DNA from: Selaginella moellendorffii
Taxonomy: Eukaryota > Plantae > Lycopodiophyta
Assembly: GCF_000143415.4 (NCBI RefSeq)
Contig: NW_003314390.1
Span: 210,973-274,972 of the forward strand
Length of the DNA stretch: 64,000 nucleotides
Direction of reading: 5' to 3'
Positions 741-17,911 of the stretch are shown piece after piece. A program made the translations under genes and the position numbers. The notes below the pieces were generated by a model. The model was not told the DNA's origin and searched no databases. It saw only the letters and a program-made list of their open reading frames with translations. Each line of letters starts with the position of its first letter. The first letter of the stretch is position 1.

Positions 741-1095
741 ATGAAGAAGGCAGATGCATGGAAGTAATAATTTTCTTTGCCTCTTGCAAATAAATAAATT
801 TGTTTTTATATGAAACTACTAAAAGATCATGTAAAAAGGACTATTAAAGCACCACCTAAAGATCATATTCAAACTATAAATATTGGAAGTGAGTTATGCA
901 AAGTTCATGAGCAAGTTTGTTGTAGATACATTCTACAAGAATATTATGAAGAATGCAAATGCATGGAAGTAATAGTTTTTTTTTGCCTTTTGCAAATAAA
1001 TAAATTTGTTTTTATATTAAACTACTAAAAGATCATGTAAAAAGGATTGTTAAAGTACTACCTAAAGATAAAGTTCATGAGCAAGTTTGTTGTGG
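741..1095. repeat. Imperfect tandem duplication (~205-bp period) in AT-rich DNA
   Basis: ATGAAGAA.GCA.ATGCATGGAAGTAATA...CCTAAAGAT starts at 741 and again at 946; the second copy has an internal deletion before AAAGTTCATGAGCAAG. Confidence 0.85.
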
Positions 1096-1559
1096 ATTGG
1101 GAGTATACACATATAAACAACCAAAGAAAACAATTTAAAATAATTCATAAGGGTTTAAATTTAGAGGGAAAAAGCTCATAAAAAAAAATGCACCCTTTTT
1201 TTTAATCAATTAAGAATTTTGGGATATTAAGGGCAAAAAGTCCAAATTCAATAGTTTACAATACACTAAATCCTCCTATGGCAAATGTTAGCTTTACAAT
1301 GTTCAAAAATAGTCTATACAATCAATTTATTCCACACTCAGTGAACTAATATGTAAACAAAGCCAAATAAAGTTCTATACTATTTTGACATACCAATAGT
1401 CTAACACAAAGGATATAATTCCCATGAAACTTAGTACTATATACTAAAATGGCATAAAGCTTAGTTTTATATACTAAAAGTTTGTTATCTACACGCTAGA
1501 GATGGTTAAAAAAGAAATGCACTCTTTTCTTCATAAAAGTAAGTAATCAATTGAAGTCA

Positions 1560-1858
1560 GCTGAAAGGCTTGGATAATCTTTTGAAATTTCATTGTGATG
1601 GGAATAGATAATTGCAATTATTGATTTTCAATGAGGAATTCCTAGTAAGCACAAGTCATCAGCTCGTGCTGACTACATCCCTACCTTTTGTACACACTGC
1701 TTGTCGTTTCTATCAATTGAATGATCTGGTGAAGTGTTCAAATTGTAACAATGTTAACAATTTACCGCTGGCAATGCTATGAGAAGTTTATTAAACCTTA
1801 TCAAGGAAGGAGAAAGCATAACAAAGTTTCCATAGGTAAACCTACAAAAAGATCATTA
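1560..1858 (+). pseudogene. 18S rRNA 3' end, degenerate pseudogene
   Basis: GAGGAATTCCTAGTAAGC, TTTTGTACACACTGC and AACAAAGTTTCCATAGGTAAACCTACAAAAAGATCATT match the conserved 18S 3' end with many C>T/G>A changes. Confidence 0.93.
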
Positions 1859-2176
1859 ACACACATCTATAAATTGTAAACCACGAACATTATATTGTCC
1901 CCCAAGGGGCCATGCTCGAAGGCATGGCTAGCCAGGACATTCAATTTGGCTGCATACACTTGTGTAAGTGACTTTAGGCTTAAGTAATATTAGGTTGGAA
2001 AACCATATTGGAAGTTTAGATCAAGGAGTTTGCAATTTATGCATGCGTGCCTCTTCCTTCCACTTATGTTATCATCCCTTAGCTATTAACTAGGGATGTG
2101 GCACACTTGGAGGCCATGTGATTGTTATCAACTAGTTGTTTCTTGTGGTCTTGTCAGGCCAAAAAAACAAAATATT

Positions 2177-2327
2177 ACTCTCAACAATAAATATCTTGGC
2201 TCTCACAATAATGAAAAACACAGTGAAATGCAATATATGATATAAATTGCAGAATTCAGTGAATCATCAAAGTTTTGAATGCAACTTGTGCTTGAGGTTA
2301 TCCCGAGGGCATGCTTACTTGAGCGTC
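2177..2327 (+). pseudogene. 5.8S rRNA pseudogene (ITS1 ~1859-2176, ITS2 ~2328-2494)
   Basis: ACTCTCAACAATAAATATCTTGGCTCTC...AATTGCAGAATTCAGTGAATCATCAAAGTTTTGAATGCAA is a deaminated version of the 5.8S consensus, in the expected position after 18S. Confidence 0.92.
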
Positions 2328-2494
2328 TACAACCATTTGCTACCTCATGCGTACTTTATGAGTGTGGGGCGAATGTGGCCATCTGTGGACTTGTGTTCTG
2401 GTTGGCTTGATTGCATATGGATGGCGTGGCCCTGATTTATCCGTATGGCATCAATGGCACACACCCCAACTAATGGCAAATTGCTCATGTGCAC

Positions 2495-2715
2495 AATCTC
2501 AAGTCAAATAAACATATCACTAAACGAAGGAAAAGAAACTAACAAGGATTTCCTTAGTAGTGGTGTGTGAAATGGAAAGAGCCCAACTTGGAAATCAGGG
2601 TGTCTCTACACCTCAAATTGTACTCTAGAGAAGGGTCCTCTGCAGCAGATTGGGTTTAAGTCCCTTGGAATGGGACACTAGAGAGGGTGAGAGCCCCCTT
2701 TAGCCTAAGAAACTG
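2495..2715 (+). pseudogene. 25S/28S rRNA 5' fragment, pseudogene
   Basis: CATATCACTAAACGAAGGAAAAGAAACTAACAAGGATTTCCTTAGTAG and GAGAGGGTGAGAGCCCC match the LSU 5' end; truncated at about 2715. Confidence 0.9.
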
Positions 2716-2981
2716 CTCTATCTTGCCATTGCTATCCAAATGAGATCCAGCAGCACGCACAAGGAGAACATGCTTTTCCTGTGTGTGCCTTTAGGCTTGA
2801 GCTTAAGATCCTGGTTGTTGTGAGTGAAACCGACAAAAAATTCCCAGCTCCTTTGCATGTTTCTGGTTTGCTGAGATATATTGCCAAAGATCAGCTGGGC
2901 TACTTGGTCCACCACCACCTCGCAATGCTGGGTGCCTAACATTTAATTAAAAAACCACAAAGAAATTGGCTACAGTGATTA

Positions 2982-3267
2982 TGCTTTATTTCGTTAAAGT
3001 GGGACTTATTCAGTAAAGTGGGACATTAATTAGCATGTGTCCACATGCCATTTCCTAGTACTTAATTAATATTTATTAATATTTCTATCAGTTTTTTAAT
3101 TTATTTTTTTATATTTCACAATATTATAACACAAAATCATATTAAAAGTTTTTAATTTATAAATTATAAAGTTAAAATTTCAATTTTTTATTGTTGTTAT
3201 AAAAATGGCATGTGGCCACACACCATAAGTGGGATAATGAAAAGTCCCACTTTAACGAAATAAAGCA
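2982..3267. mobile_element. MITE with 26-bp perfect TIRs
   Basis: TGCTTTATTTCGTTAAAGTGGGACTT (2982-3007) is the reverse complement of 3242-3267; flanked by TGATTA on both sides; internal inverted pair CCACATGCCATTT / AAATGGCATGTGG; AT-rich non-coding core. Confidence 0.9.
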
Positions 3268-4032
3268 TGATTAAACCTTACAGACACCCAGCCAACACCC
3301 CAAGTGGTAGAAGCCAACGAGCATGAGTTTCATCTCTTCATCTTATGTAGGATAACCCTCTGCCACGTGAGTGAGTGATGAAGCATCTCTCTAGCAAACG
3401 CTTATAATGTATATTCATTTCACAGTCAACAGGTTGAAAGCTGACGCCATTATCAACATAGGCCAGGTTCCAAGCAACAAGATCATGCCTCCCTCGCCAC
3501 ATAGGGCGCGGACCATACTTGAGCTCACGAGTTGAAGAGTTGAGCTCAATTTTTAATTGTAATTTAGTACAAACATTATAAATTTTAAAATTTTAAGGTT
3601 ATGGTGAACCTAGTAATTTAATAACTCTCTATATATTATATAGATAAAAATGTTCTAAAGAACACTTTTTGTTCTAATAATTTAAATATTTACTACATGC
3701 AATGATAGGGACATTTGTTAGAACATAAAATAAAATGTTTGCAAAAGGAGTATTCTTGTCACTTCTTTAAATTTGTACTCTATACTTTCTGGCTAGTAAA
3801 TGTTAGGTTTGTCAGAATTAAAAAATTATTAAATTTGAAATAAGATTCTATGTAAAGCCATATAACCGTTTGAAAGGAAAAAACATAACCGTTAATGTAA
3901 GCTTATTGCATATAAAAGAAAGACTTGGTTCTTTGTAGAATACATTCTTGAGGGGTTTGTCGTAGCATACTGTCTAGAATTTATAGATCTTCATTCACAC
4001 TCTCATTCGAAAAAAGAGAAATACACCTACAA

Positions 4033-4485
4033 ATGTCTATGGGTTCTAGTGCTGGTAATTTTAACTCTCACAATCTTTCTTCCCAGGGTTCAAGGGCTAG
4101 GAGATGCAATAACTATCCCACTTCACAGCATAACCAAATCACACAAGAGAATGAAAGAGAGGATAGTGAGGATAGTGATCATGAGTTGGAGATAAATGCA
4201 ATGACAGAGGGTGCAACAAATTGGGTGAAAAGGAATGCCCTTTTACTTGTTTTAGAAAAGTGCAATTCTGCCACTTTCAAGAAGTGCCTCATATGTTTTC
4301 TAGCGTTTGGTGGAAACAATGGCAATGATCAGTATGATGGTATATATGCTCTTGCAACACATTGCAACATCACGCACCCGAAAGATTATCATGAAATCTT
4401 TTTTGAGATGGTAAAGACAGAAATGGAGACACACGAGTACTATGGGCAGTATTGTGAGAAGAACACTCGAAAGCATATAAAATGA
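4033..4485 (+). CDS. MULE accessory ORF-A, 150 aa, with C-x2-C...H...H zinc finger (zf-XS-like)
   Basis: Intact ATG-to-stop ORF in AT-rich surroundings; motif CLIC...DQYDGIYALATHCNITHPKDYHEIFF. Confidence 0.6.
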   Translation: MSMGSSAGNFNSHNLSSQGSRARRCNNYPTSQHNQITQENEREDSEDSDHELEINAMTEGATNWVKRNALLLVLEKCNSATFKKCLICFLAFGGNNGNDQYDGIYALATHCNITHPKDYHEIFFEMVKTEMETHEYYGQYCEKNTRKHIK

Positions 4486-4654
4486 AAAGTGAAATGAAAA
4501 GGCACATTTTTATTAATTATATAAAGTATAATAAGTTTTATTGATAGAGAATAAACATCGATAGTGTTGGAGAAATCTAATTAGCTCCAAAAGTTTTCTG
4601 CAACTCAGCAATAGTAAGGCTTGCTTGGTGTATATGAATATCCACTTTAGGATC

Positions 4655-7600
4655 CTAGTGCAAGATGTTGATGAAGATGTAGTACATATACTTGCAAGGA
4701 GTATATGCCTTCCCATGTTCCTCACGCTTCGTAAAGTCTGGACATGTGCAAGAAGGAAAGTCGTGAATGGCAATTGTGTACTCTCCACCTTCTGTTTTGA
4801 CTGTGTACTCCTTTGCAAGCGCAGTGATGTACTTCGTGGAGAGAATCTCACACTCAAGTGTTTGAGCCAAGTTTATTTTACCTTGCTTTTGCTTGGAGAC
4901 GGTACCAATAAATTTAACTGCCTTACCTTTTCGTGCTGGCCTCCTGTGCATCTCTGTAGGAATAGTCCTGCTCCTGTCACTCATGTCTCCAACTCTCCTC
5001 TCAAGATTAAAACCAGATTTCTCAAGGTTTTCAATCTCATCCGAGGTGAGTGCGACCCCATTAGCAACCGGCCATTCTTTAGGTATTGCATCAGGTTTAG
5101 TCACTATAGTGTCTTCAAGCCGCTTCGTATGGTTGGCATCGGTGGTGCAACAATATAGCCAGCACCATCTTGAAAATCCTGCTTGCTTTCGTTCCCCATA
5201 GAAACATGGGGCTGGAACAGAAGCAGACTTTTCACCACGAATCCAGGCCCAACACTTGCCCCTCGGAAGCATCCCCACACACCTTACATTCGATTTTGTT
5301 GGCATGCGTCGGATTGCCCATTGCTTTGGCTCCACGCTATGGTAAGCAATTTCAACCTGTTGCGATGCACTCTCTTCATCAGCCACTTGAGGTGGCTCGG
5401 TCCGAGAGCGGTGTCTTGGAGTAGAATGGTACTCAACATCAGGCCTGTGAGAGCTTTTTGCTCCAAGGTCCATACCAACATTTTCCCCAGCAAAGGAAAA
5501 ACGACACTTTGAGCGGACAGTCTTCATATCACCAATAGAAGCTCGGGGAGTGTACTCCATAGATGTGCCACGGACCACTTCCTCAACTACAGTTGCCACT
5601 GTTCGGGCGGGTGGAGTTAATTTTCTCTTCATCCTATCATGTAACATCTCAACAGAAGGCACTGTTCCCATGTATCTTCCTTCCTCGAATGCCAATGCTT
5701 TTGAAGATTGCTTTATAGCACGTATCAAATCTGATAGACTGGCTTTGTATAGACTCATCTTCCCTTTCCCTGCCTCAGAGGAACGCCAACTCCAATGCTT
5801 GCTTTTGGAGAGATTCACAGTTGGGGTGTATGCGAGGTCCTCAAGTGGTTGATCCTAATGGAAAAGGCAATATTAAAAGGTAATAAAAGGAGAAGAAAAA
5901 ATATAAACCAACCTGAAAAGAGTGATATCCCCATTGGAACATCCTAACTTCCCACCATCCTAACCATGACTCAAGTTGTGGTAGGCAACTTACGTCTGTA
6001 TGGCCATCTTCACGCCACCACATTTAGATCTCGTTTGCTTTTGCCTCATGCTCTTCTTCAGAAGGTGCAACCTGCCATTGTTTGCACAACTCCTTAAATA
6101 TTGATTGAAACTCTGGCTTGATAAGGTGGCAGTGCTAGTTTAGGCTTTGAGCCCAATGGAACTCACAAGTCCTCTCACGACCTTCCAATGGTTGACCATT
6201 CCCAAAAACTACTCAGATACCATTCCAGTTTGCACCAGCCCCATCTGCCATGAAACCACAAAAGTTTGCAAGCTTACTAGTCCACTTTAGGACAATATCA
6301 GAGAGGGACTTCCAAAATATTTCTTGTGCTGTCTGGTCTTGTACTTTAAACTCTGTTGTCGCAATTGTTAAGTTACAACATAGCCTATGAAAGCATAAAT
6401 ATTATAACAATTTCAATATAATGAGAATAAAAATTACCTTGGATCATACACATGAGCTCCCATGGTTGTCCAACCGGATACACGCTCCATATGGTCAAAA
6501 TGTACCCATGCATTTGCAAGGTCACTGGACCCAAACATGTCCATTCGGGAGACAAGATCTACGCCAGAGGTAAAGCCCATGGTAGACATTTTGAAGACGA
6601 AGGGGCGCTCTTGCTCATTCACAACTTGGTCTGGAAACAAACTTCCGTGGATGAACTAGTATGGACAGATCCATTTCAATTCAAGGATGTTTTTGATTGC
6701 AACTTCCCCTCTCGAGATTCACACATCCAAGATTTTATCCTAAACAATATAATGTAAGAAAAAATTATTATTATAACATATGAAAAATAACGGATGTACC
6801 TCCTTAGGCTAGTAGCAGGTTGTACTCCTCGTAGTAAGTCCCACAAGCTAGCCTCGTTTAGTTGAGTCTTTTGGCAACCTGGATTGAGTAAAGTATTTGC
6901 GATAAAATCCTTGAGGACGGTCTTCTGAACATGCTTCGGAGTTGCAGATGAGTTTCTCATAGTCTCTTCCTATACAACATCTTTGAAACGGTTGAGAGAA
7001 CTCCTTTGTATCCCTTCCTGCATTGGATGCATATGTGTGCCAACATGCACTGCAGCTCTTCCAGCCACTCCATCCCGTGGAAGAAAGTAGTACATCTTGG
7101 CCTCGCAGATAGCACGACATAGAGGAGCATTTTTGCAGAATCGACATTTGAATCCAACAGCAATGGTGTCACAGGCTGGAGGATTGACTGCAGACCCTTC
7201 GAAAAATATAGAGTTTCTAGAGCGGTCTCGATTGCATGCTTCATCCACACAATCTAAATGCCCGCCACAATGAACTATAGACATTGTGCCTTCAAAATGT
7301 TGGAAGTGTGTGGTCTTGATCTTGTACCAATTGTGAACATTCTACTTGGTTTCCATCCCCTTCCGTTTGGAACCTGTGCTGCTGACAAGAGGTGGTAGCT
7401 CGAAGAAAATGTTGCCGTTGTAGGAGGATGGAAGCTCACTCACAAGCCTATACAAAAACAAGTGCACATCGATTGAGAGGTGTGAGAACTGGAAAGCATT
7501 GCTAACGGCTTTGAATATTGCTGAAGTTGGAGTTGGAGCTGGTGAATTTGGCGCCGACACTAGCATGACATCTCCACTTGAACTAAAAGTGGACGAGAGG

Positions 7601-7908
7601 ATAACGACTGACTCTTGCTTCACATTCACTTTCGCTGGAGCGCATTTTGGCATTTTGACTGGAGATCCGAACACTCGAATCTCCTTCGACTTGGAATTTT
7701 GTAAATCCCATTGTTGTCCACCCTCGCCCACACCAGAAAGAAGAAACTCCGAGTATGCAACTATACCGGTGTCGTTGCGGATCACAGCCTCTAAAGAAAT
7801 AGAGCCAAGACCAACATCAAAACGCCGACATAAAAAACTTTCAGAAACAATACTCTGAGAGAATGAAAGAGGTGGGTGATCTCGAAAATGAAGAAGAAAC
7901 CTCTCCAT
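4655..7908 (-). pseudogene. MULE transposase (WRKY/GCM1-like finger, DDE core, SWIM), spliced, with premature stops
   Basis: N-terminal CRFC...CEAK...HVGTHMHP; core WVHFDH...FMADGAGANW...RTCEFHW (D, D, CxxH); TVNLSKSKH at the site of the third catalytic E; C-terminal SCTCPDF...PCKY SWIM; in-frame stops at 7342, 6970 and three in 6025-6220; introns near 5855-5911, 6386-6437 and 6741-6799. Confidence 0.88.
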
Positions 7909-8816
7909 CCTTCTCAATAGGTTTTGGAGTTCTCTCTCTTTATGCTACTTGTAAAAATCTATAGTGAAACATAATTGAAATTTAAATAGAGTAATAAGAA
8001 GACAACGTACAAAATGAATTTAAATTCTATAGCAAATTTAACATGTGTAAGTGTGACAGTATTAATATTACTGTCATCTATTATGATGTCTAATGCATGT
8101 ATACACATAGATCCAAGGAAAGATTTTCAGCACGTGAAGTTTGATAGTTAATAATGATACCAGTAATGACATTCTGCTATAACATGTCAAACCAAGAGAT
8201 CCAATCTAACTATCAGCACGTGTGATATGTCAAGTTGTCAAATTTTAAGTGGTAGATGATAATAAATCTTGTCAAATCTTATTCTTCAATGACAAATTTG
8301 ATTCGTAGTACAACTCAAGTTTTATCCATAATTGTGAACACTGCTCAATGACATTTAAAGTACGTGCCTATTGTTTAGGATCTAATACAACACAAAATAA
8401 ATTTCTGGATGAGGATTCATCCATTCATAGATGGATATAGTACAACATATTTTAACGTGCCTTATTTATACTCTTTGAAGTTCTTGTAACGATTCCAAAA
8501 TATGTACAAAATATTGATGAGAATGCATCCTTTCTAGATAATTTGTAAAATATAATATCATATCTCTAATAACAGAAATGTTGATAGGTGCTAGTTATAC
8601 CATCATTAAAATATACAAAATAAAGAAGCATAATTTACATATAATAATAATAATAAGATAAAATAAGATCAAAGATATTGTGATGGTTGAGATTTAGGTT
8701 ATTCGGAATGAACGGCCAGGATTAGAGATTGGTTAGGGTTAGGGCAGCCGTCAGGATTAGGGTTAGGGTAGCCACCAAGATTAGGTTACTGTTCGCATCG
8801 TGAGTGGAGCGCGCAG

Positions 8817-9078
8817 GAGATCGAGAGATTGAGCGCGAAGGAGATCGAGGGATTGAGTGCGAAGGAGATCGAGCGATTGAGCGCGTGAGAGATCGAGAGA
8901 TTGAGCGCGTGAGAGATCGAGAGATTGAGCGCGCGAGCGGGAGAGTTTGAGCGCGCGAGCGGGAGAGATTGAGCACGTGAGCGGGAGAGATTGAGCGCGC
9001 GAGTGGGAGAGTTCCAGAGAGATTGAGTGCGCGAGCAGGAGAGATTGAGTGCACGAGCGGGAGAGATTGAGCGCACAA
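8817..9078. repeat. CpG-rich tandem array inside the MULE (24-bp then 22-bp units)
   Basis: About 4 copies of GAGATCGAGAGATTGAGCGCG(AAG/TGA) followed by about 7 copies of GAGAGATTGAGCGCGCGAGCGG. Confidence 0.92.
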
Positions 9079-9114
9079 GAAATCTAGCACGATCAAGAAA
9101 TCGAGGGAGGAAAG

Positions 9115-12100
9115 ATGCCACTAAGGGTAAGTTTCGATTTGATTGCTTCCACTTCCATTTTTTGAGTCCATTTCTTCCATTCCATTGCTTCCTTTGCTGG
9201 CCGAGGTCGAGCTCGGGCGGTCCACATTGGGCAGNNNNNNNNNNNNNNNNNNNNNNNNNNNNNNNNNNNNNNNNNNNNNNNNNNNNNNNNNNNNNNNNNN
9301 NNNNNNNNNNNNNNNNNNNNNNNNNNNNNNNNNNGCTCCGGGCGGCCACCTCGGGCACTTTGGCTGCCCAGGGGGCCGAGGTTATTCAAATAACCTCGGC
9401 CCCCTGGGCAACCAAAGTGCCCGAGGTGGAGTCTAGGCCCACTTGATTTTTTTTTTCTCTTTGACTGTTTGAATTTCTCATTATCTTTATTTAGTTTGAC
9501 TAAAAAAAATTTTTCTCTTGAAGAAAAGGAAAATTGTAACACATAAAAAGGTTGTTGGAGCCAAGAAGACACGAGAAGTTCAATTTGGCACTGACGACGA
9601 CATCACAATAGACATGTCCATTGGCACAACAGAGACACATTTAGTTAGAGATTCACCACCTCCACCACCATCACCTCCACCATCACCACCTCCACCACCG
9701 CCATCGCCACCTCCACCACCTCCATCACCACCTCCACCACCTCCATCGCCACCGCCACCACCACCATTGCCACCACCACTGCCACTATTGCCTCTGCCCC
9801 CGCCACCACCGCCACCACCACCAACGCAAATCCCTGAAGTTGGGCAATCTAGTGGTGTTCACGATAGGGAACTTGAGGAACAGTCTGGAGCTGAAAGAGT
9901 TGCAGACTTTCCTGACAACGTGGTGGACAAGCGCTTCCAAGAGACTGTTATGCGGACAAGGGAAAAAGCAGTTCACCAAACACTTGAGGCGCTCAAGTGG
10001 CCAGGCCCTTGTGACTTGATCAGAGAAATCCCCCTTTGCCGTTTGCAGCAGACGAACCTTGTCCACACAGCATCCAAGTATGTCAACCCGGATATATACA
10101 GCTTGTTCAAACAGAATGGCTTGCAACAAATATCGGTATGTTTTTAGTCTCATTTTGCAAGCCAGGAACAATGGAGATCATTACTGTCACACCCGAGATT
10201 GTGAATAGCTGGGATCCTATTTAGAGGAGGAAGTCCCTAGAATTTGATGACATGCTTATTAGACATCCTGAGACTCGACAGCTTGCGGGGACAATGTTCC
10301 AAATTATTGATGGTAACCACCGATATGGAGCTTAGATGAAGTGTATCGACGATCATTTTCGCGATGATCCCGTCTACCATATCAACGTTCCAGTCGGCCA
10401 TGTCTACGCGAGGGGACCTTTGAATGTCAACAGACTTATCTTGGCCTGCCAAAAGATCAATGCGTAAGTTTTATAATTTTACCTCTAACTCCACTTTAAC
10501 TTGTTTTGTTGTGTTTAAATGTAGGCTTGGGCAATTCGCTGTTCAAAAATAAAATCTTGTCCATAACATCGAGCAACTTCAATTTTTGGCAGATTTGAGT
10601 GAGGATGACATCGGCCAACATTATGGTGATGATCTCGCAACACTTGTTCGGCACTCACGCACTCGAAATGATGGTACAACTTGGTTCAACAACCTAATCA
10701 ATTTTATACTCGCTGTGTGGTGTAAGGTATGTCTTTCCCTTTTATTTTATAAAAGCATCTTTTAATTGTTTTGGTTTTCAGCCTTTGGTGAAGGTCAAGC
10801 AGGATGCTTACGAACTTGCATATCCGGAGAAGAGTCGGGAAGAGCTCTCAGCTGAGTTTGTACAAATTGAGCACAAAATTCAGCATGCAAAGTCCTCAAA
10901 GTTGAAGAAACTAGTATGCATTGCAAACAATCGCAGGCCGAAGGAGTGGCTAGAGATTATAGCCGAAATTTCTTCTCATGAATGTAAGTTTTTTATCACA
11001 CTTCATTTTTCTTAATTATGCATATGTTACTTTTATAGTGAACAAAACTCCAGATGACATGATTTACAATATCACAAAATCGAAGCTTCCATATAAGCAA
11101 CAGATAAAGACTCTGGAGTTCCTCAATGTCTGCTTGATGAACAAAGAGAAAGGACTGCTAGAACTATTTGAGAACATGATGAGAAGGGCTGTCTACATCA
11201 CGCAAACTATAAGTGAAGGTGAGAAGTTCTTGGCACCACACATAGGTGACGATCCAAATGGCACATTCATGTCTTTCGACACCTACATCAACATGTCATT
11301 GGAAGGGATCGAAGAGGGGTGGCTGCCAGAGAAGTCTACAAGCACAACAACTTATGATTGCCAACATGGTCAACCTTATTTCATGCGACATGTAGCTTAT
11401 AGGTATAATATGATTTCTAAGACTGTTTTTTAATATATATTATTTACAGGTATCTTCGATATAGAGGCATGCCATTTGAAGCACCAGTTTGCACTCGACT
11501 TGTTGCAAAGGGTGTAAGGGATGGAGGAATGTACCCAACAATGTTTGCAAGAGTTCCGAAGGCACGGAAGATAGAATGCCCTTGGGAGTTGGAGCTCCTA
11601 GGGAAGGAGACCTCTACACTAGATCACGAGGAAATTATCAATGCTAGCAACGATGGCAATGCAAGTGACGATGAAGACAAGGATGAAGAAGCTCCAGATC
11701 AAGTTCGTGTTCCACCACCAGACAGTCAGGAACAGGCTCCAATTCAACCATCAAACAACTAAGATCCGGATCAGGTTCTACCAATAAATAACGATGATAA
11801 AGTGGTTCACAGAATATCACGTCGACCTCGAGGTAAGCAAAAGTGAATTTTACAAACTAAAGGTGGTAATACATGTTTTTTGCAGCAATGACTGTTAGTA
11901 GTAATTTCATTCCAGCTCGACGAGATGCTTGTGAAGAGGAGTTGGAGGAACTCTCATCGACAACACGCCATATGACAGTATCATACTATTTATTACTTTT
12001 TTCATTCACTTAGCTCTTTTATAGGTCCGTCTTGTGTCCCCAATAACACAACGAGGCATTATGGGTATCTTCATTGGCTCTTACAGTAGATTATTGACAT

Positions 12101-13096
12101 CTTTCACGGAAGACGACATCAACATGGATATACGCCGCCAGTTCAACCGTTGGTGCCGAAAGATACAAAGGCCCGTGCTCCCAGTTGCAGACTTCATTCT
12201 CTTTGACTTTCCAGATGGTCTTTCAGATATCGATGGGAAAGTTGAGGATTGGAACTTTCTCACACCTGACCACTTGCGCGATGCAATCCTATTGTCCGAA
12301 GCACTTATGCTCGAAGCTGGCCATGTCGTCTTCATCCTACCGAACGACCCCAACTGGATGTATGAGCTTATGACATGCGCAACAGAAGTTCATTTCAAGT
12401 CATTCTCTTCCGAGTGCATCATGGATCCTATTGGCGTTGATACGAGGGGCGTCCAAGGGAAGCCTGAAAAGGTGAGTATGTATTTTATATTTTTATCTAA
12501 TTTCTAAACATTTTTATTTTCCAAGTTATGATGTGGACCTATCATGCCTTCTGCAGAAACACATATGATGGGTTTCGTGATAGCAAACGTGCAGCATGAG
12601 TTTTGCCTGGGTACGACAGTTCCACTAACATCATACCCAACCTTGTGGATGAGCAGATCCGCAACACGTTTCCAGGGTACCGATTCCGAACTCCATCGGC
12701 AATGCAAGTCTTGCTTGAGCTCTATTGCCCACCAGATGGTGTTGTGATTGATTGCACAGCAGGTAGCGGTTCTATGGTGGAGGCAGCACGTGACTCTAGT
12801 AGGTCGGTGTTTGCTATTGAAGAACATCATTTCTTCAAATGCCGGCTCAGAGGATTTCGTGAGTTGCCTTCAACCTCAAGAAGGTAAATTATGTTTATTA
12901 AAATTTCAATATATATTTCATTCTATTTTATAGATCACAGTCACCTGGAGTTTCTAGAATTGGAGGCTTTGGAAGTCTCCCTGACTATGCAGAAGCCATG
13001 GCTCAACATATGCAAGGTGAATCTTCCCCACAATACCAATATAGGAGGAAGTATAAAAGAAATCATTATGTTGATGATGAGGCAGAAGAAACTTAA
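9115..13096 (+). pseudogene. MULE cargo gene: Pro-rich region + ParB/Srx-like domain + beta-class N6A/N4C DNA methyltransferase fold; multi-exon, with stops and a frameshift
   Basis: Putative exon 1 MPLR|GTAAGT (9115-9126) joins in frame at 9524; FQIIDGNHRYGA at 10297-10332; ADFILFDFPDG (motif IV-like) at 12187-12219 precedes RTPSAMQVLLELYCPPDGVVIDCTAGSGSMVEAARDSSRSVFAIEE (motif X-I-II-like) at ~12688-12824; stop at 13094-13096. Confidence 0.8.
9346..9429. repeat. GC-rich palindrome: 41-bp arms, 2-nt loop, 1 mismatch
   Basis: 9346-9386 is the reverse complement of 9389-9429 except for one position. Confidence 0.9.
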
Positions 13097-13395
13097 TTGC
13101 ATCCTTAAATAAAATGGAAAGCTTGTTATATGTTAGATGTCAGTGAAAGTGTCAGATGTCAGTAAAATTGTCAGATGTCAGTGTCAGTGTCAGATACCAT
13201 AATTATAGATTATCATTCTTGCTTGTCACCATCACTTTGTAGCACTTGTGTGTTGCCATCTCCTCCTTCAACATTTTGTAAACAATTGTATGTGATATGA
13301 TAGCACCTTCTAGAACAAAGTATGTTACCTACAACTAATATCATTTTATTATATTTTAGTGACAATACTATAGTATAGTAAAGTAATTCTAAATT

Positions 13396-13977
13396 TTATA
13401 TTCCACTATAGGGTGGCCTAAAAACCCCATATTTTGCAATAGCCAATGCAGTGTTTCCCAAGGGGATGTTGTTCCTCACTATGAAGCGATAGTGGGTATG
13501 TGTCTGTAACTCATTCTTGAATCTATTGTACATCCACACGTGCACATTTTCCAAACCTGCCGTTGGGCAATTTTTACAGTGCTCAAGAAAAGTTTGTAAA
13601 CCCATAGAGCCATTTGTCTTGTCCAAGAAAAAGTAGCATATTGGACACCGAATGTAATAGTATTCTATGCTTTCAAGTAGTCCTACCATGTCAGGAGCAA
13701 GATCTTGCAAAAACATGTGGCATTGCTCTTGAAGCGCTAGAGGCAATCCCTCTCTAGTAGCAAAATCTGGAATTTCACATATAGGGAGCTCTAATTTAGC
13801 TTCACTAGAGCCCTCGGCAGAAAAAGGATTGTTATGTGGAGGTGAAGGTGGAATGTTAGTAGAACTTGGGGATGGAGGTGGAGATTGATATGAAATGCTG
13901 GGGGGCCAAGTACGATTAGCAATGGGTCCCCTTTGAGCCATTTCAATATAAACTTCTAAAGAGCTCAAGGAGAACAC
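13396..13977 (-). CDS. MULE accessory ORF-D (likely ATG at 13944) with zf-XS-like zinc finger
   Basis: Uninterrupted ORF; Pro/Ser-rich N-terminus followed by RCPIC-x18-H-x12-H (GLQTFLEHCKNCPTAGLENVH). Confidence 0.6.
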   Translation of the reverse strand: MFSLSSLEVYIEMAQRGPIANRTWPPSISYQSPPPSPSSTNIPPSPPHNNPFSAEGSSEAKLELPICEIPDFATREGLPLALQEQCHMFLQDLAPDMVGLLESIEYYYIRCPICYFFLDKTNGSMGLQTFLEHCKNCPTAGLENVHVWMYNRFKNELQTHTHYRFIVRNNIPLGNTALAIAKYGVFRPPYSGI

Positions 13978-15416
13978 AAAACCTACAATGACTATAACTT
14001 TTCTAGATATTTTATATACTAAGTTTTAGTCTTGGGAATGAGGTTTATTTATTATGACACTGACAATACTTAGATTCTTGGGAATGAGGTTTATTTATTA
14101 TGACACTGACAATACTCAGATTCTTTAAATGTCAGTCTTGGAAATGGGGCTTCATAATCATAGCTTTCTTGTAAACATAAGAGCTTCTAGAATTTTAGAT
14201 TATCGTGTATACACATGCTCTATCATTATGATGAATCTTACTTTGCTACACATATATTCTTTTCTACACATGCCAAATGTCTAGGGAAATAAATTGCAAG
14301 GAAATATAGACCATATTATAGTGGTAGAGCACGTTGGCACGCTACCATTCTCTCATGTGAGATTGCTTTTTAGTCTTGGAAATGTAGATAAAGTTGATTC
14401 TTTGATGTGATATTACTTTTGAGTCTTTCGAAAGATTTTGATTTCTTTTATCATTATTTACAAACAATTCCCAAAATTTTTTAATGAGGATTCACTGCAA
14501 AATATACCTTGGTCTTATCATATGAGAGGATTGCGATATAGGCAAGCAATAGAGTTTTTAATATGAATTAATATGTAAATTACAAATGTCATGGAAAGTT
14601 TTATGGAGTAGATTTCTTGGTGCTTTCCGTTGTGCTATTCATTTCTTCATTTCTCTTACTCTGGACTGTTGTTTCAGAAGTAATAGGAGCATTTTTATCA
14701 ATCGTGATAGTGGTCTCCACATTCCCAGATGGGTAATAAGGACCAGGAGTGTAATATGGAGATTGTGGTAGTGAAACAAAATTAACATTCTCACATTCCT
14801 TTGTACTACAACTCTTACTCACAGATCTTGTATTTTCCTTGCTTCCCATCTTCTCAAGAACCCTAAAAAATCTTTCAAATGAAGGAATAGTATCTACAGC
14901 TGTAAAAGTATTCAAAATATTAAGTAGTCAAATCAAATATGACAGCTGTAACAGTTGTCATAATAAAATAATATAGTTTTATAAAAGATAGGTTCTCATG
15001 AACTTTGTCTTTTTTAAACAATTCAATCTTATAGAAACTTTTAACTTAGATATTTACGTATTTTAATATTTTAAAGTTTGCTAGAACCTTCATTTGTTCA
15101 ATTTAGATCTCCTTTGTAATATTTCTTATTGACTATGTTGACTTGAGTTGACTTGTGTTAAATTGAGCTCAACTCAACTTTGGACCATCCCCGCCACATA
15201 TTATGATGAGTCATGCTTGTTAAATTTGAAACTTGCAACCATAAAGTGCAATGGTCTTTCTAGATTCCTGGCTTAGCCACACTGCTTGGATCCCCTTGCC
15301 ACAATGTTTCAACTACTTTTAACAAGTTTGTTTCCTTTTGAATCTTAGGTTTACTAAAATGTTTAAAGCTGCCACTTAGGGCAAAAACCCTAGCTGCCAG
15401 TAGGACAGCGTAGCTT

Positions 15417-17911
15417 ATGGAGGTGGATGGGGAAATCCGGGAAGTTGAACGGCAGATTAAAGTGGTTGAGCGCCAAATTATCGCGGTTGAGGGGCAACTC
15501 GAGCAACCAAATGATCCCGAGAAGGAGAAGCGGCTGTTCGAAAAGGAGAAGCAGCTGCGCAAGGAGAAAAAGCAGCTGCGCAAGGAGAAAGAGCAGCTGC
15601 GCGACAAGGAGCTCCTCTCATTGAGGTCCAAGAGGAAGTCCCAGGGTAAGCTGCTACTTCCTTTGTTGGATGTTTCCTTTGCCCTGCACTTGTCTCACTT
15701 GTCCATTGGCTATGGCGGATCGTTTGATTGCTGCCTGTGGCACTGTGGTTTCTTGAACGGCACCTTGTTGTGGTTGGCTGTTTTGTGTACACAGATTGTT
15801 ATTCTTTACTGCGCTGCCTGCATGCGTTGTAACCAGTTTCTTGGTTTTTCTTACAAAAACAGACGTTCATGTTCACAAGCGGCTTCGTCCTAGCGTGCCT
15901 TTCCTGGTACCGAGAAATTTTTCACATGCGCTTCCTTTCAAGGGGAGAGACACAGAAATGGCTACGGTTGCAGAGCATGTGGATAAGTATTACAACTCCA
16001 TTTGCTTTGCAAGTGGGGTTATCCAGCGTGCTAGCATGCTGTTTGTATTATTTGAAGGCCTTAGTGGAGTCGGAAAAACTAGATGCTTGATGGAGATTCA
16101 CAGGAATGTGGAGGGCTATTTACGAAGTGCAAAGCTCAAGGAACTGTATCTGGCTAAGGCGGTCACCCAACTCTTCATCAGCTTCAATTGCACAGCTGTG
16201 GCAGACAGGAAGCCGCATTACGTCACTCCCTTCTTTGCAAAGGCCGTGAAAGACAAGGGTGGAAGAGCAGCAGGCTACATGTTTATGAGGGCATGTTTAC
16301 TAGCGGGGGGTATCTATGGTCAGTCTTTCGTGGAACTGGATGATCGAACTCAACAATGGATACTGTATGGCAAAGAGCCCATGACCGTATTGGCGAATAA
16401 CATCAGGGTGGCACTTGGGTTGCAGCCGTGCCAGCGGATTTTCGTGTACCTCTTGATGGATGACCTGCACGCCGTAACTGAAGGCACGCCGTAACTGAAG
16501 GCTCATTCGTGCATGGAATGTGGGATTACCTTAGCACCTTCATGTCCACTGACTTTCGACCGGCTCCATATCAAACTTGCCAAATGGTGATACTACCGGT
16601 TGCTGCTGCCACTTTGGTGCCATCCTGTGGATGCTTTGGCCTGTCAGACTGGCTGGCCTGCCAGATCAAACTAGAGCCCCTCAGCGAGGTCTCAGCAATA
16701 GATGTTCTGAAGGAGGCAATACAGACTAGTCGGCTCACTGAATGCCTGCCAGTCATCCGCAACGTTATACGTGATGTGAGCTACCTGCCCCGGCTCTTGC
16801 AGTATATATATGAAGCTTGGAAGCTAAGACCCGAATTGGATAGCGCAGACTTGCGTGATCTTGAGGGTCACTTACGCAGATGTTTGGAGTTGAAGCTGAG
16901 CATGTGGACGCACGAGATCCTGGCAATAAGCAATACCGATGCAGTGAGACGAATGGTGAGGTTGTGCTTGACAGGCGACGCCGCAGACATGGGGTTTATG
17001 GAGACAAAGGAGTGCACGTATGGCTACGTCACCTGGAAGCGGTGTGGAAGCAGCGGATATACGTTCCATTAGCCAAGCTTGTTGCTGGTGGGGCTTGCCA
17101 AGGAACTGAGGGTGCATCGATATCTCACTCTTTCGGATATTAGCGCGTTGACGAGTGATAACTTTGAGCTGCCTCTTTTGGACATGATTCACGCGCGAAT
17201 GAGGCTTCATGCAGGAAGTGAATGCCTTCTTTCAGATCTCTTCCGCAGGGCATGTGGCTCGAATAAGGCAATGACAGCGAAGATGCAGATCGCATCTAAG
17301 ATCGTTTTTGGGGACGAAGCTGCACAGTTTTACGTGCTGAACAGGAGTAAAAACGGCTTCGAGCACTCGGGTGATGAAGGCATGGTGCTCCAATGTGGTA
17401 CTGACTTTCAGCGTCCATTTGGCAACAGTGAACAATCTGTGATTACAAAAACGCACACGAACTCTCTGGGCATTGACATGAGGGTGTTTGCAAGACATGG
17501 AGGCACGCTTTTGCGACATGATGGGGCTGATTTTGTTTCTTTTGCAGACAGCGAAATTGAAATATGGGCCCAGGCGAAAGGCAGGACATCCCCTCTAGGC
17601 TGGAGCCAAGTAATTGAGTGCATTAAAGTGTGCTTCCAAGAATGTTTCAACCTCGAACCAGGTGTGAAGAAGTTCTGTGTGGTCTTTAGTCTGCACGGTT
17701 TCACATTCGAGAAAGTGGATCTCTATACACTTTTCAAGGTAAGCCAGGCTTCATTTCTGTTATGAAACTAACTATTGACCTTCAGGAGGAGGGGATCAGA
17801 ATGGGAGACACAGCCAAGTTCAGCAAGATGTATGAACACACTCTCCTCGTTGATCAAACTGGCTTGAATGTTTTCATGCCGGATGTCATGCAGCGACACT
17901 ATAATTATTAA
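15417..17911 (+). pseudogene. Crinkler/RHS-type coiled-coil + P-loop NTPase + REase-fold gene, disrupted
   Basis: EKxQLR coiled-coil repeats; Walker A GLSGVGKT; Walker B LLMDD; IDMRVF...IWAQAK; introns 15646-15862 and ~17739-17784; 17-bp duplication frameshift at 16468-16501 and in-frame stop at 17070. Confidence 0.75.

Follow-up and report, generated by a model that had tools for sequence, protein, structure and literature searches.

The 64,000-nucleotide (nt) stretch of Selaginella moellendorffii DNA analyzed here (contig NW_003314390.1, positions 210,973 to 274,972; hereafter the window, whose internal coordinates are used throughout) carries a pseudogene on its plus strand at 9115–13096. 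These limits were drawn in an earlier reading of the letters alone (the original prediction), and the gene inside them is supported by collinear tblastn blocks, RNA joints and frame continuity; the pseudogene comprises approximately 10 exons and would span some 1,050 codons if read through. Divergent transposase remnants with a C-terminal SWIM-type zinc finger occupy 4655–7917 of the minus strand, recognized as open reading frames (ORFs) homologous to minus-strand genes at three related loci (L004, L005 and L006, described below). Between the two divergent genes, directly 5' of the proposed ATG, lies a CpG-rich tandem array (8807–9076), delimited by repeat analysis, in which a unit of 22–24 nt is repeated about 10 times. 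Repeat comparison sets the approximate limits of the enclosing element at 3504–15193; imperfect terminal inverted repeats of approximately 45 nt lie close to both limits and include the palindrome TTGAGCTCAA. The transposon is a MULE-like DNA element with a SWIM-finger transposase, and the gene is a decayed copy of its accessory (cargo) gene. Its intact protein of about 1,000 residues is predicted to comprise a basic, proline-rich N-terminus, a ParB/sulfiredoxin-type (DGNHR) domain, a middle region of about 480 residues and a C-terminal β-class (PF01555-type) amino-methyltransferase fold. To characterize this protein, natural intact relatives were analyzed in place of a mended window copy, namely the Selaginella models P0001 and P0009 and a locus from the liverwort Riccia sorocarpa (L006).

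Homologs within the same species anchor the gene. A full HMMER scan with the 147-residue piece encoded at 12034–12474 identified eight proteins, and all six that were looked up belong to S. moellendorffii. P0009 and P0001 are overlapping models of a single S. moellendorffii gene, LOC9661604, with P0009 covering the N-terminal part and P0001 the middle and C-terminal parts. Aligned by tblastn, they form eight collinear exon blocks across 9866–12860 (E 1e-40 for P0009, 6e-36 for P0001), with most blocks at 32–47% identity and the motif I exon at 60%; because of this collinearity, the motif stretches are not chance resemblances. Two of the protein homolog searches with P0001 and P0009 regions returned the query gene alone, and a third, with the ParB-like part, recovered five short relatives, including Riccia KAL3681596 and sequences from Logan and ENA assemblies.

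In a presumed RNA library (X1), contigs 95–99% identical to the window gene have five introns of 47–61 nt with GT..AG-type ends spliced out (10464–10524, 10725–10779, 11831–11883, ~11977–12023 and 12472–12524), and the loose end of an X1 contig carries on beyond a sixth (10984–11038). The joined exons share one frame apart from a single frameshift. Together with the collinear blocks, these joints bear out the claim of one multi-exon gene with spliceosomal introns. The exon 4/5 boundary (10983/11039) was set by hand from the RNA-library joints. The middle region (10525–11976; exons 10525–10724, 10780–10983, 11039–11402, 11450–11830 and 11884–11976) is delimited by RNA joints and homology to P0001 residues 1–340; it is mostly helical where modeled, and no Pfam family matched it.

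The C-terminal part is encoded on the plus strand by two exons, 12024–12471 and 12525–12887. By sequence alone its assignment is marginal. Against the Pfam gathering threshold for PF01555 (N6_N4_Mtase) of 26.7 bits, the window piece scored 22.9 bits (E 9.6e-5), a Selaginella paralog 16.2 bits (E 0.011) and the Riccia relative 32.1 bits; only the last of the three exceeds the threshold, and all three alignments are limited to profile positions 164–218. A PDB sequence search with the methyltransferase part gave a similarly marginal match to 2zie (E 0.088). Other approaches were more decisive: a language-model search placed PF01555 clusters at 0.96 (65 of 100 matches), tblastn against phages matched 202 records, with 20 of 20 among the matches listed annotated as DNA methylases, and hhalign of the family against three phage methylases gave a probability of 97%. 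BLASTP against a phage methylase misaligned the N-terminal half, so hhalign and MAFFT were relied upon.

The structural comparisons agree with these searches. With an AlphaFold model of P0001 residues 340–627 (mean predicted local distance difference test score, pLDDT, 55; predicted template modeling score, pTM, 0.60), the best 25 rows of a Foldseek search of the PDB were all β-class DNA amino-methyltransferases (E 3e-8 to 6e-7), M1.HpyAVI, M.BceJIV, CcrM, MboIIA and TTHA0409 among them. M.PvuII and rotifer N4CMT (8s9m, rank 34) follow at E up to 2e-6, and MT-A70 RNA methyltransferases rank after the DNA enzymes. A shape search of the ESM Atlas returned PF01555 clusters only (template modeling scores of 0.58–0.65 by model and at most 0.75 by hit), three of which are ParB_N fusions in phages. 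Because the language model, tblastn, hhalign, Foldseek and the ESM Atlas agree, the C-terminal part can be firmly assigned a β-class amino-methyltransferase fold at the level of predicted structure, and the Rossmann methyltransferase that the original prediction expected is recovered.

Extended and global hhalign and MAFFT alignments also recover the permuted motif order of the β class, in which motif IV lies near the N-terminus and motifs X, I and II follow at the C-terminus. The two stretches from which this order had been proposed, DFILFDFPDG and LLELYCPPDGVVIDCTAGSGSMVEAARDSSRSVFAIE, map to 12190–12219 and 12711–12821. The pattern D..AG.GS..AIE aligns on DPFAGSG..IE of phage methylases; the G-x-G of motif I and the Glu of motif II are kept (TAGSGS ... 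AIE), and the Pro-Phe ahead of the loop is replaced by Cys-Thr or Ala-Thr. On sequence comparison, motif I (VVIDCTAGSGS, 12741–12773) and motif II (SVFAIE, 12804–12821) form a putative S-adenosylmethionine (SAM) pocket at 12741–12821, and this stretch is the best conserved section of the whole protein. The solved β-class enzymes M1.HpyAVI (5hfj), M.BceJIV (8urk), CcrM (6pbd), M.MboIIA (1g60), TTHA0409 (2zie) and M.PvuII (1boo) share the fold and the permuted order; at 10–18% identity, however, they are distant, and the window family reads D-x-P-D instead of their (D/S)-P-P-(Y/F) and has lost the Pro-Phe of motif I.

Motif IV is where the family departs furthest from its relatives. The pentapeptide D-(F/L/M)-P-D-G falls column for column on D-P-P-Y-G, D-P-P-F and D-I-P-Y of three phage enzymes in extended and global hhalign and in MAFFT, and the strand before the motif and the Trp after it align as well. 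The window copy reads D-F-P-D (12205–12216, plus strand), a placement that the family alignment also supports. In total, six of the seven Selaginella sequences carry D-x-P-D (the window copy with DFPD and five paralogs with DMPD or DLPD), the seventh carries DLPN, and the equivalent in R. sorocarpa is D-L-S-S. Neither the window copy nor its six Selaginella paralogs nor the Riccia relative has a canonical (D/N/S)-P-P-(Y/F/W/H) motif IV. The motif is therefore atypical, as had been noticed, and is degenerate in every relative in which it was read. The accompanying suggestion that the TTT codon of DFPD derives from CCT by deamination is not supported: the second position is F, L or M in every Selaginella paralog, and a near-identical transcribed copy, which has a synonymous change at 12204, has none listed for 12205–12219. 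Judged from these alignments, the aromatic-to-Asp change is a trait of the family rather than damage to the window copy; the clade as a whole has kept the cofactor side but not the base-contacting motif. In Riccia, it is the motif X-I-II region that exceeds the PF01555 threshold.

Amino-methyltransferases use the aromatic residue of motif IV to stack against the flipped base and are catalytically crippled without it; METTL14, an inactive partner, reads EPPL. Because motif IV is degenerate, canonical base methylation is doubtful, and the motif comparison makes it unlikely that the intact protein performed canonical N6-adenine or N4-cytosine methylation of DNA. An active but atypical DNA N6-adenine/N4-cytosine methyltransferase, guided by the ParB-like domain to mark its own transposon, nonetheless has points in its favor. 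The protein has the fold and motif order of PF01555 enzymes; conservation peaks in the motif X-I-II region (60% identity), with the GxG loop and the motif II Glu kept; a natural phage enzyme tolerates a residue other than Pro at the second position of motif IV (D-I-P-Y); and β-class enzymes do work in eukaryotes, as in the case of rotifer N4CMT (PMC8885841) and Marchantia DN4MT1. However, Asp takes the place of the base-stacking aromatic in six of the seven Selaginella sequences and Asn does so in the remaining one, the whole of the Riccia motif is D-L-S-S, the Pro-Phe of motif I is also replaced, and one of three sequences tested passes the PF01555 threshold. We thus regard an active enzyme as rather improbable, and favor a methyltransferase-like part that acts without canonical methyl transfer.

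The N-terminal domain (10025–10463, plus strand) is of the ParB/sulfiredoxin-like (DGQHR) type, as indicated by a family alignment (A4), an AlphaFold2 model of the Selaginella paralog and fold matches. It contains IPLCRL at ~10028 and, exactly where it was first reported, IIDGNHR at 10303–10323. The conserved blocks of the alignment are IPLCR(L/M), VR, G(Y/F)..G.AVFYV, WD.LWR and KFFV.DGNHRLLAWM, and all seven sequences that extend over the motif have an identical DGNHR(L/Y). The model, built on this alignment, has a mean pLDDT of 70, rising to approximately 90 at residues 81–130 (the DGNHR strand-helix), and a pTM of 0.62. Searched against the PDB with Foldseek, it matched sulfiredoxin, ParB, KorB, Noc, PadC and SbnI (E at least 0.13), and against AlphaFold DB clusters it matched DGQHR-domain and ParB/Srx proteins (E 1e-3 to 2e-2). 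The best 19 rows of VIA-align were all ParB, Noc, KorB, PadC, Srx, SerK or SbnI (Z 5.0–6.6 over ~93 residues at ~3 Å), and eight of 10 ESM Atlas rows were ParB_N, DndB or DUF6551, with one further row labeled ParB/Sulfiredoxin and one phage cluster. The best NCBIfam match, TIGR03187 (DGQHR domain; E 0.006), aligned on the motif, far below its cut-off; a PDB sequence and profile search with the ParB-like family gave no match, and tblastn of this part against phages gave noise only. Because the matches are unanimous, although each score is modest, the N-terminal part is assigned a ParB/sulfiredoxin-type fold, with modest support at the level of predicted folds. Of the two Pfam matches that had been expected, the PF01555 fold was thus recovered; the ParB identity stands at fold level, where matches in four libraries are nearly all ParB/Srx/DndB and the DGNHR motif is kept, and fails as a Pfam ParB_N sequence match.

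On language-model features, P0009 residues 50–280 (window 9990–10726) score higher with fungal DUF3723 clusters (0.95) than with ParB_N (0.92); hmmscan found no DUF3723 match in the ParB-like part. DUF3723 is an accessory gene family of the fungal Starship elements, and other giant-transposon cargo may share the ParB-like domain.

The breadth of these fold matches invites a reading in which the methyltransferase-like domain acts on RNA, protein or a small molecule, and the ParB-like domain, instead of binding DNA, works on the model of sulfiredoxin, SerK and SbnI as an NTP-binding or kinase-like module. Srx, SerK and SbnI are indeed among the matches, MT-A70 RNA methyltransferases follow the β-class DNA enzymes in the fold list, and an altered motif IV could signal an altered substrate. 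Yet the nearest relatives by sequence, language model and shape are phage and bacterial DNA methylases, several of them fused to ParB_N, and the transposon context and adjoining repeats suit a DNA-directed role; we give a non-DNA substrate little credence, and retain a role on DNA as the preferred reading.

The transposon context was established by comparison of loci. A 9-kb Logan contig (L004; SRR327433, 1–9055) carries a ParB-like ORF head-to-head with a SWIM-finger transposase homolog that exceeds the Pfam SWIM threshold. At L006 (R. sorocarpa chromosome CM100800.1, 1000–16100), the ParB-like gene is likewise head-to-head with a homologous transposase, and on an ENA contig (L005) the ParB-like gene and homologous transposase pieces lie approximately 7 kb apart. 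The ParB-like gene is therefore near a homologous transposase at all four loci and head-to-head with it in the window, L004 and L006, a repeated layout that upholds the originally proposed placement in a plant transposon. Moreover, the gene called immediately 3' of the ParB-like gene at L006 bears a PF01555 match, and the two domains thus adjoin on one strand, beside a transposase of one family, in the liverwort as well as in the lycophyte. The cargo-gene family is real, spliced and old in land plants. That the gene is instead a host gene or a captured host gene (Pack-MULE style) lying incidentally inside a transposon, as the annotation of one Selaginella member as an ordinary gene (LOC9661604) and the failure to find a target-site duplication in a search at the ends of the window element might suggest, is very improbable, given its station beside one transposase family in the window, L004 and L006 (and ~7 kb from it in L005) and its multi-copy, decaying state.

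The window copy is a pseudogene. The stops reported at 10222, 10333 and 12597 are real, and two further in-frame stops lie at 10550 and 11760. In the comparison with other copies, 10333–10335 (TAG) is TGG (Trp) in both X1 and X2, 11760–11762 (TAA) is CAA in both, and 12597–12599 (TGA) is CGT (Arg) in both; tblastn aligns 10222–10224 (TAG) with Trp in the paralog, and 10550–10552 (TAA) was read from the window sequence and the paralog alignment. The suspected frameshift near 10125 is equally genuine: within 10119–10140, the frame switches between 10123 and 10141, and other copies carry one additional C after 10119. So is the broken splice acceptor at 12523–12524, which reads AA in place of AG and gives the RNA joint 12471>12525 an intron with GT..AA ends. 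X2, a DNA contig from public runs that covers 9885–12839 at 97.5% identity to the window copy, is free of the frameshift and of at least three of the stops. Compared with the other copy, the window has A/T against G/C 61 times and the reverse 17 times, an excess that is the expected pattern of methylated-cytosine deamination in a silenced element. The window copy is functionless, having been silenced and eroded through C>T/G>A changes. Synonymous and non-synonymous differences between copies number 15:23, a ratio that is uninformative because the window copy decays neutrally.

Repeats surround the gene and its relatives. The units of the window array vary by CG>TG/CA changes and were found only at 8807–9076 within the window. 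L004 has 17 copies of a 26-nt palindrome, TCAACCTTGCGTCAACGCAAGGTTGA, clustered at the contig end (4–239), just 5' of the ParB-like ORF (5135–5443) and 3' of it (7346–8165). Riccia L006 has approximately 40 copies of a 22-nt palindrome (TTCCRGCG....CGCYGGAA), clustered in the left subterminal region (1054–3776), between the transposase and the ParB-like gene (7832–8952) and in the right subterminal region (15159–16007). Clusters in these positions are consistent with the binding of one protein at the promoter and at both ends, be it the ParB-like protein or the transposase. L006 also has a 24-nt tandem array at 16137–16518 and 22-nt repeats at 9510–9619. In the window, the 9-mer RTTGAGCKC occurs 13 times against 2.3 expected, with ten occurrences inside the element, where its sites form the palindrome TTGAGCTCAA in each terminal repeat (3539–3550 and 15162–15173) and recur in the tandem array (8828–9074). 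That the terminal repeats and the array have the TTGAGC core in common is at most a hint and carries little weight, the pattern having been picked post hoc.

On balance, we judge it somewhat probable that the intact gene encoded a cargo protein of the MULE-like element that regulated its own element, with the ParB-like part tethering and the methyltransferase-like part non-catalytic. The ParB-like part, perhaps together with the middle region, would tether the protein to repeats of its own element, namely the promoter-side tandem array in the window and, in relatives, the palindrome clusters at the ends and in the promoter region. The methyltransferase-like part would then serve as a cofactor- or DNA-binding module without canonical N6-adenine/N4-cytosine methyl transfer, and the protein as a whole would regulate transposition or chromatin state in an element-specific manner. 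There is a precedent in TnpA of En/Spm, a non-transposase protein that binds short promoter and subterminal repeats and affects both transposition and the methylation state of the element; the analogy is functional only, with no sequence or fold relationship, and the corresponding binding by the window protein is hypothesized.

Several observations weigh against this proposal. An Asp at the aromatic position is no proof of inactivity, and the repeats could instead be transposase sites. The window element has a direct-repeat array only, with no dispersed palindromes found, unlike L004 and L006, and L004 has no detectable methyltransferase part in its 9 kb. Confidence in the two structure models is modest (mean pLDDT 55 and 70). 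For the ParB-like part, Pfam ParB_N gave no sequence match, and the fold matches are individually weak: the Foldseek E values begin at 0.13, and Z below 8 is the tool's range for a possibly common arrangement only. In addition, no helix-turn-helix was recognized after this domain; the structural alignments stop at the N-domain, and the helices that follow match nothing specific. Expression of the gene is supported but thin, because no single RNA contig covers both the ParB-like and the methyltransferase-like parts and two 2026 RNA-seq runs of the species gave zero coverage of the gene; the X1 library, moreover, is presumed to be RNA.

The combination of the two domains in transposons has precedents in algae. 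Dinatale et al. (2025) described, in Ectocarpus Sola1-1 (Sola1-1_Ec32), a 1,104-residue protein with ParB-like and DNA-methyltransferase domains encoded opposite the transposase (PMC12477816), and cited similar proteins for green and red algal transposons. As described there, the Ectocarpus accessory gene resembles the window gene in joining ParB-like and PF01555-type domains in a protein of about 1,100 residues on the strand opposite the transposase, and its product is proposed to bind and modify its own element (PMC12477816). Its host element, however, is a Sola1 of an alga, whereas that of the window is MULE-like and in a land plant. Petroll et al. reported red-algal Plavaka cargo with PF01555 and ParB-like domains on separate genes and repeat arrays adjoining the ParB-like gene (10.1101/2025.02.11.637652). 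Bostrychia Plavaka PAG2 (PF01555) and PAG3 (ParB-like) thus resemble the window gene as transposon cargo with repeat arrays beside the ParB-like gene, but differ in having the domains on separate proteins, with other partners (SET; 2OG oxygenase), in a different transposon superfamily. Iyer et al. (2016) recognized ParB-linked methyltransferase clades in algae and chytrids (PMC4738411). The novelty originally claimed for the plant fusion was therefore overstated, since ParB and PF01555 accessory genes head-to-head with a transposase had already been described for a brown alga and cited for green and red algae (PMC12477816). In the literature searched, no report of the ParB-methyltransferase design in land-plant transposons was found; new here are the land-plant host, the MULE-like superfamily and the degenerate catalytic motif.

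Beyond transposons, ParB_N–PF01555 fusions are enriched in phages (PMC12704722). Phage and prophage fusions of ParB_N with N6_N4_Mtase have the two folds in the same order and a DGxHR-type motif, and in shape they are some of the closest matches of the methyltransferase model. They are, however, proteins of approximately 400–470 residues, without introns and without the middle region of about 480 residues, and it is the plant proteins that have the degenerate motif IV; the three plain phage methylases that were read have DPPY, DPPF and DIPY. Rotifer N4CMT (PDB 8s9m; PMC8885841) and Marchantia DN4MT1 (10.1101/2021.02.12.428880) likewise place a bacterial-type PF01555 fold in eukaryotes. Both are host genes with demonstrated N4-methylcytosine activity, unlike the window gene, which is transposon cargo with a degenerate catalytic motif; neither is known to have a ParB-like domain.

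Transposons are usually viewed as passive targets of host silencing. If the window gene and its relatives do encode self-recognizing cargo with a methyltransferase-derived module, some plant transposons would operate an epigenetic or regulatory device of their own. The finding carries the algal design over into land plants and a further transposon superfamily. Because the motif is degenerate across the clade, the question to ask is no longer which base is methylated but what role a conserved pseudo-methyltransferase has on DNA. More speculatively, and with considerable doubt, MULE-like and Sola1 transposons of land plants may, from liverworts through to lycophytes, share a conserved form of self-recognition in which a ParB-like/pseudo-methyltransferase fusion loads on element-specific repeats of the promoter and both subterminal regions and controls chromatin state or the synapsis of ends. 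Such a system would parallel bacterial ParB/parS in a eukaryote and on chromatin, and the dead methyltransferase would serve in it as a SAM-sensing or base-flipping reader.

The remaining features of the region are minor. Near the ends of the element, the ORFs 4033–4485 (plus strand) and 13396–13977 (minus strand) have a common Cys/His pattern (C-x2-C ... H-C) and no Pfam match. Just beyond the element, 15796–17765 (plus strand) holds three consecutive long ORFs; a weak P-loop in the first of them (AAA_16, E 0.013) is their only recognizable feature. Within the pseudogene, the start exon (9115–9126, plus strand) and the last exon are proposed ends and remain putative. Exon 2 encodes a low-complexity Pro-rich tract (9653–9823, plus strand), recognized from the sequence and preceded by a Lys/Arg-rich N-terminus. 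Reads of the two 2026 RNA-seq runs stack solely on its Pro-rich CCA/CCG repeat (9720–9863); they run into unrelated sequence and therefore come from other proline-rich genes, and are no evidence of expression. An assembly gap (9235–9334) lies inside putative intron 1, and no read or contig of the public runs spans both of its sides. Neither domain depends on the gap, because the first residue with homology (9866) is approximately 530 nt 3' of it. Motifs resembling GAGCTCGGGCGG lie 5' of the gap, and directly 3' of it is a 41-nt hairpin (9346–9429; 98% complementary, with a 2-nt loop) at which DNA contigs stop with loose ends. This hairpin looks like a foldback insertion, or one similar to a miniature inverted-repeat transposable element, that broke the assembly.

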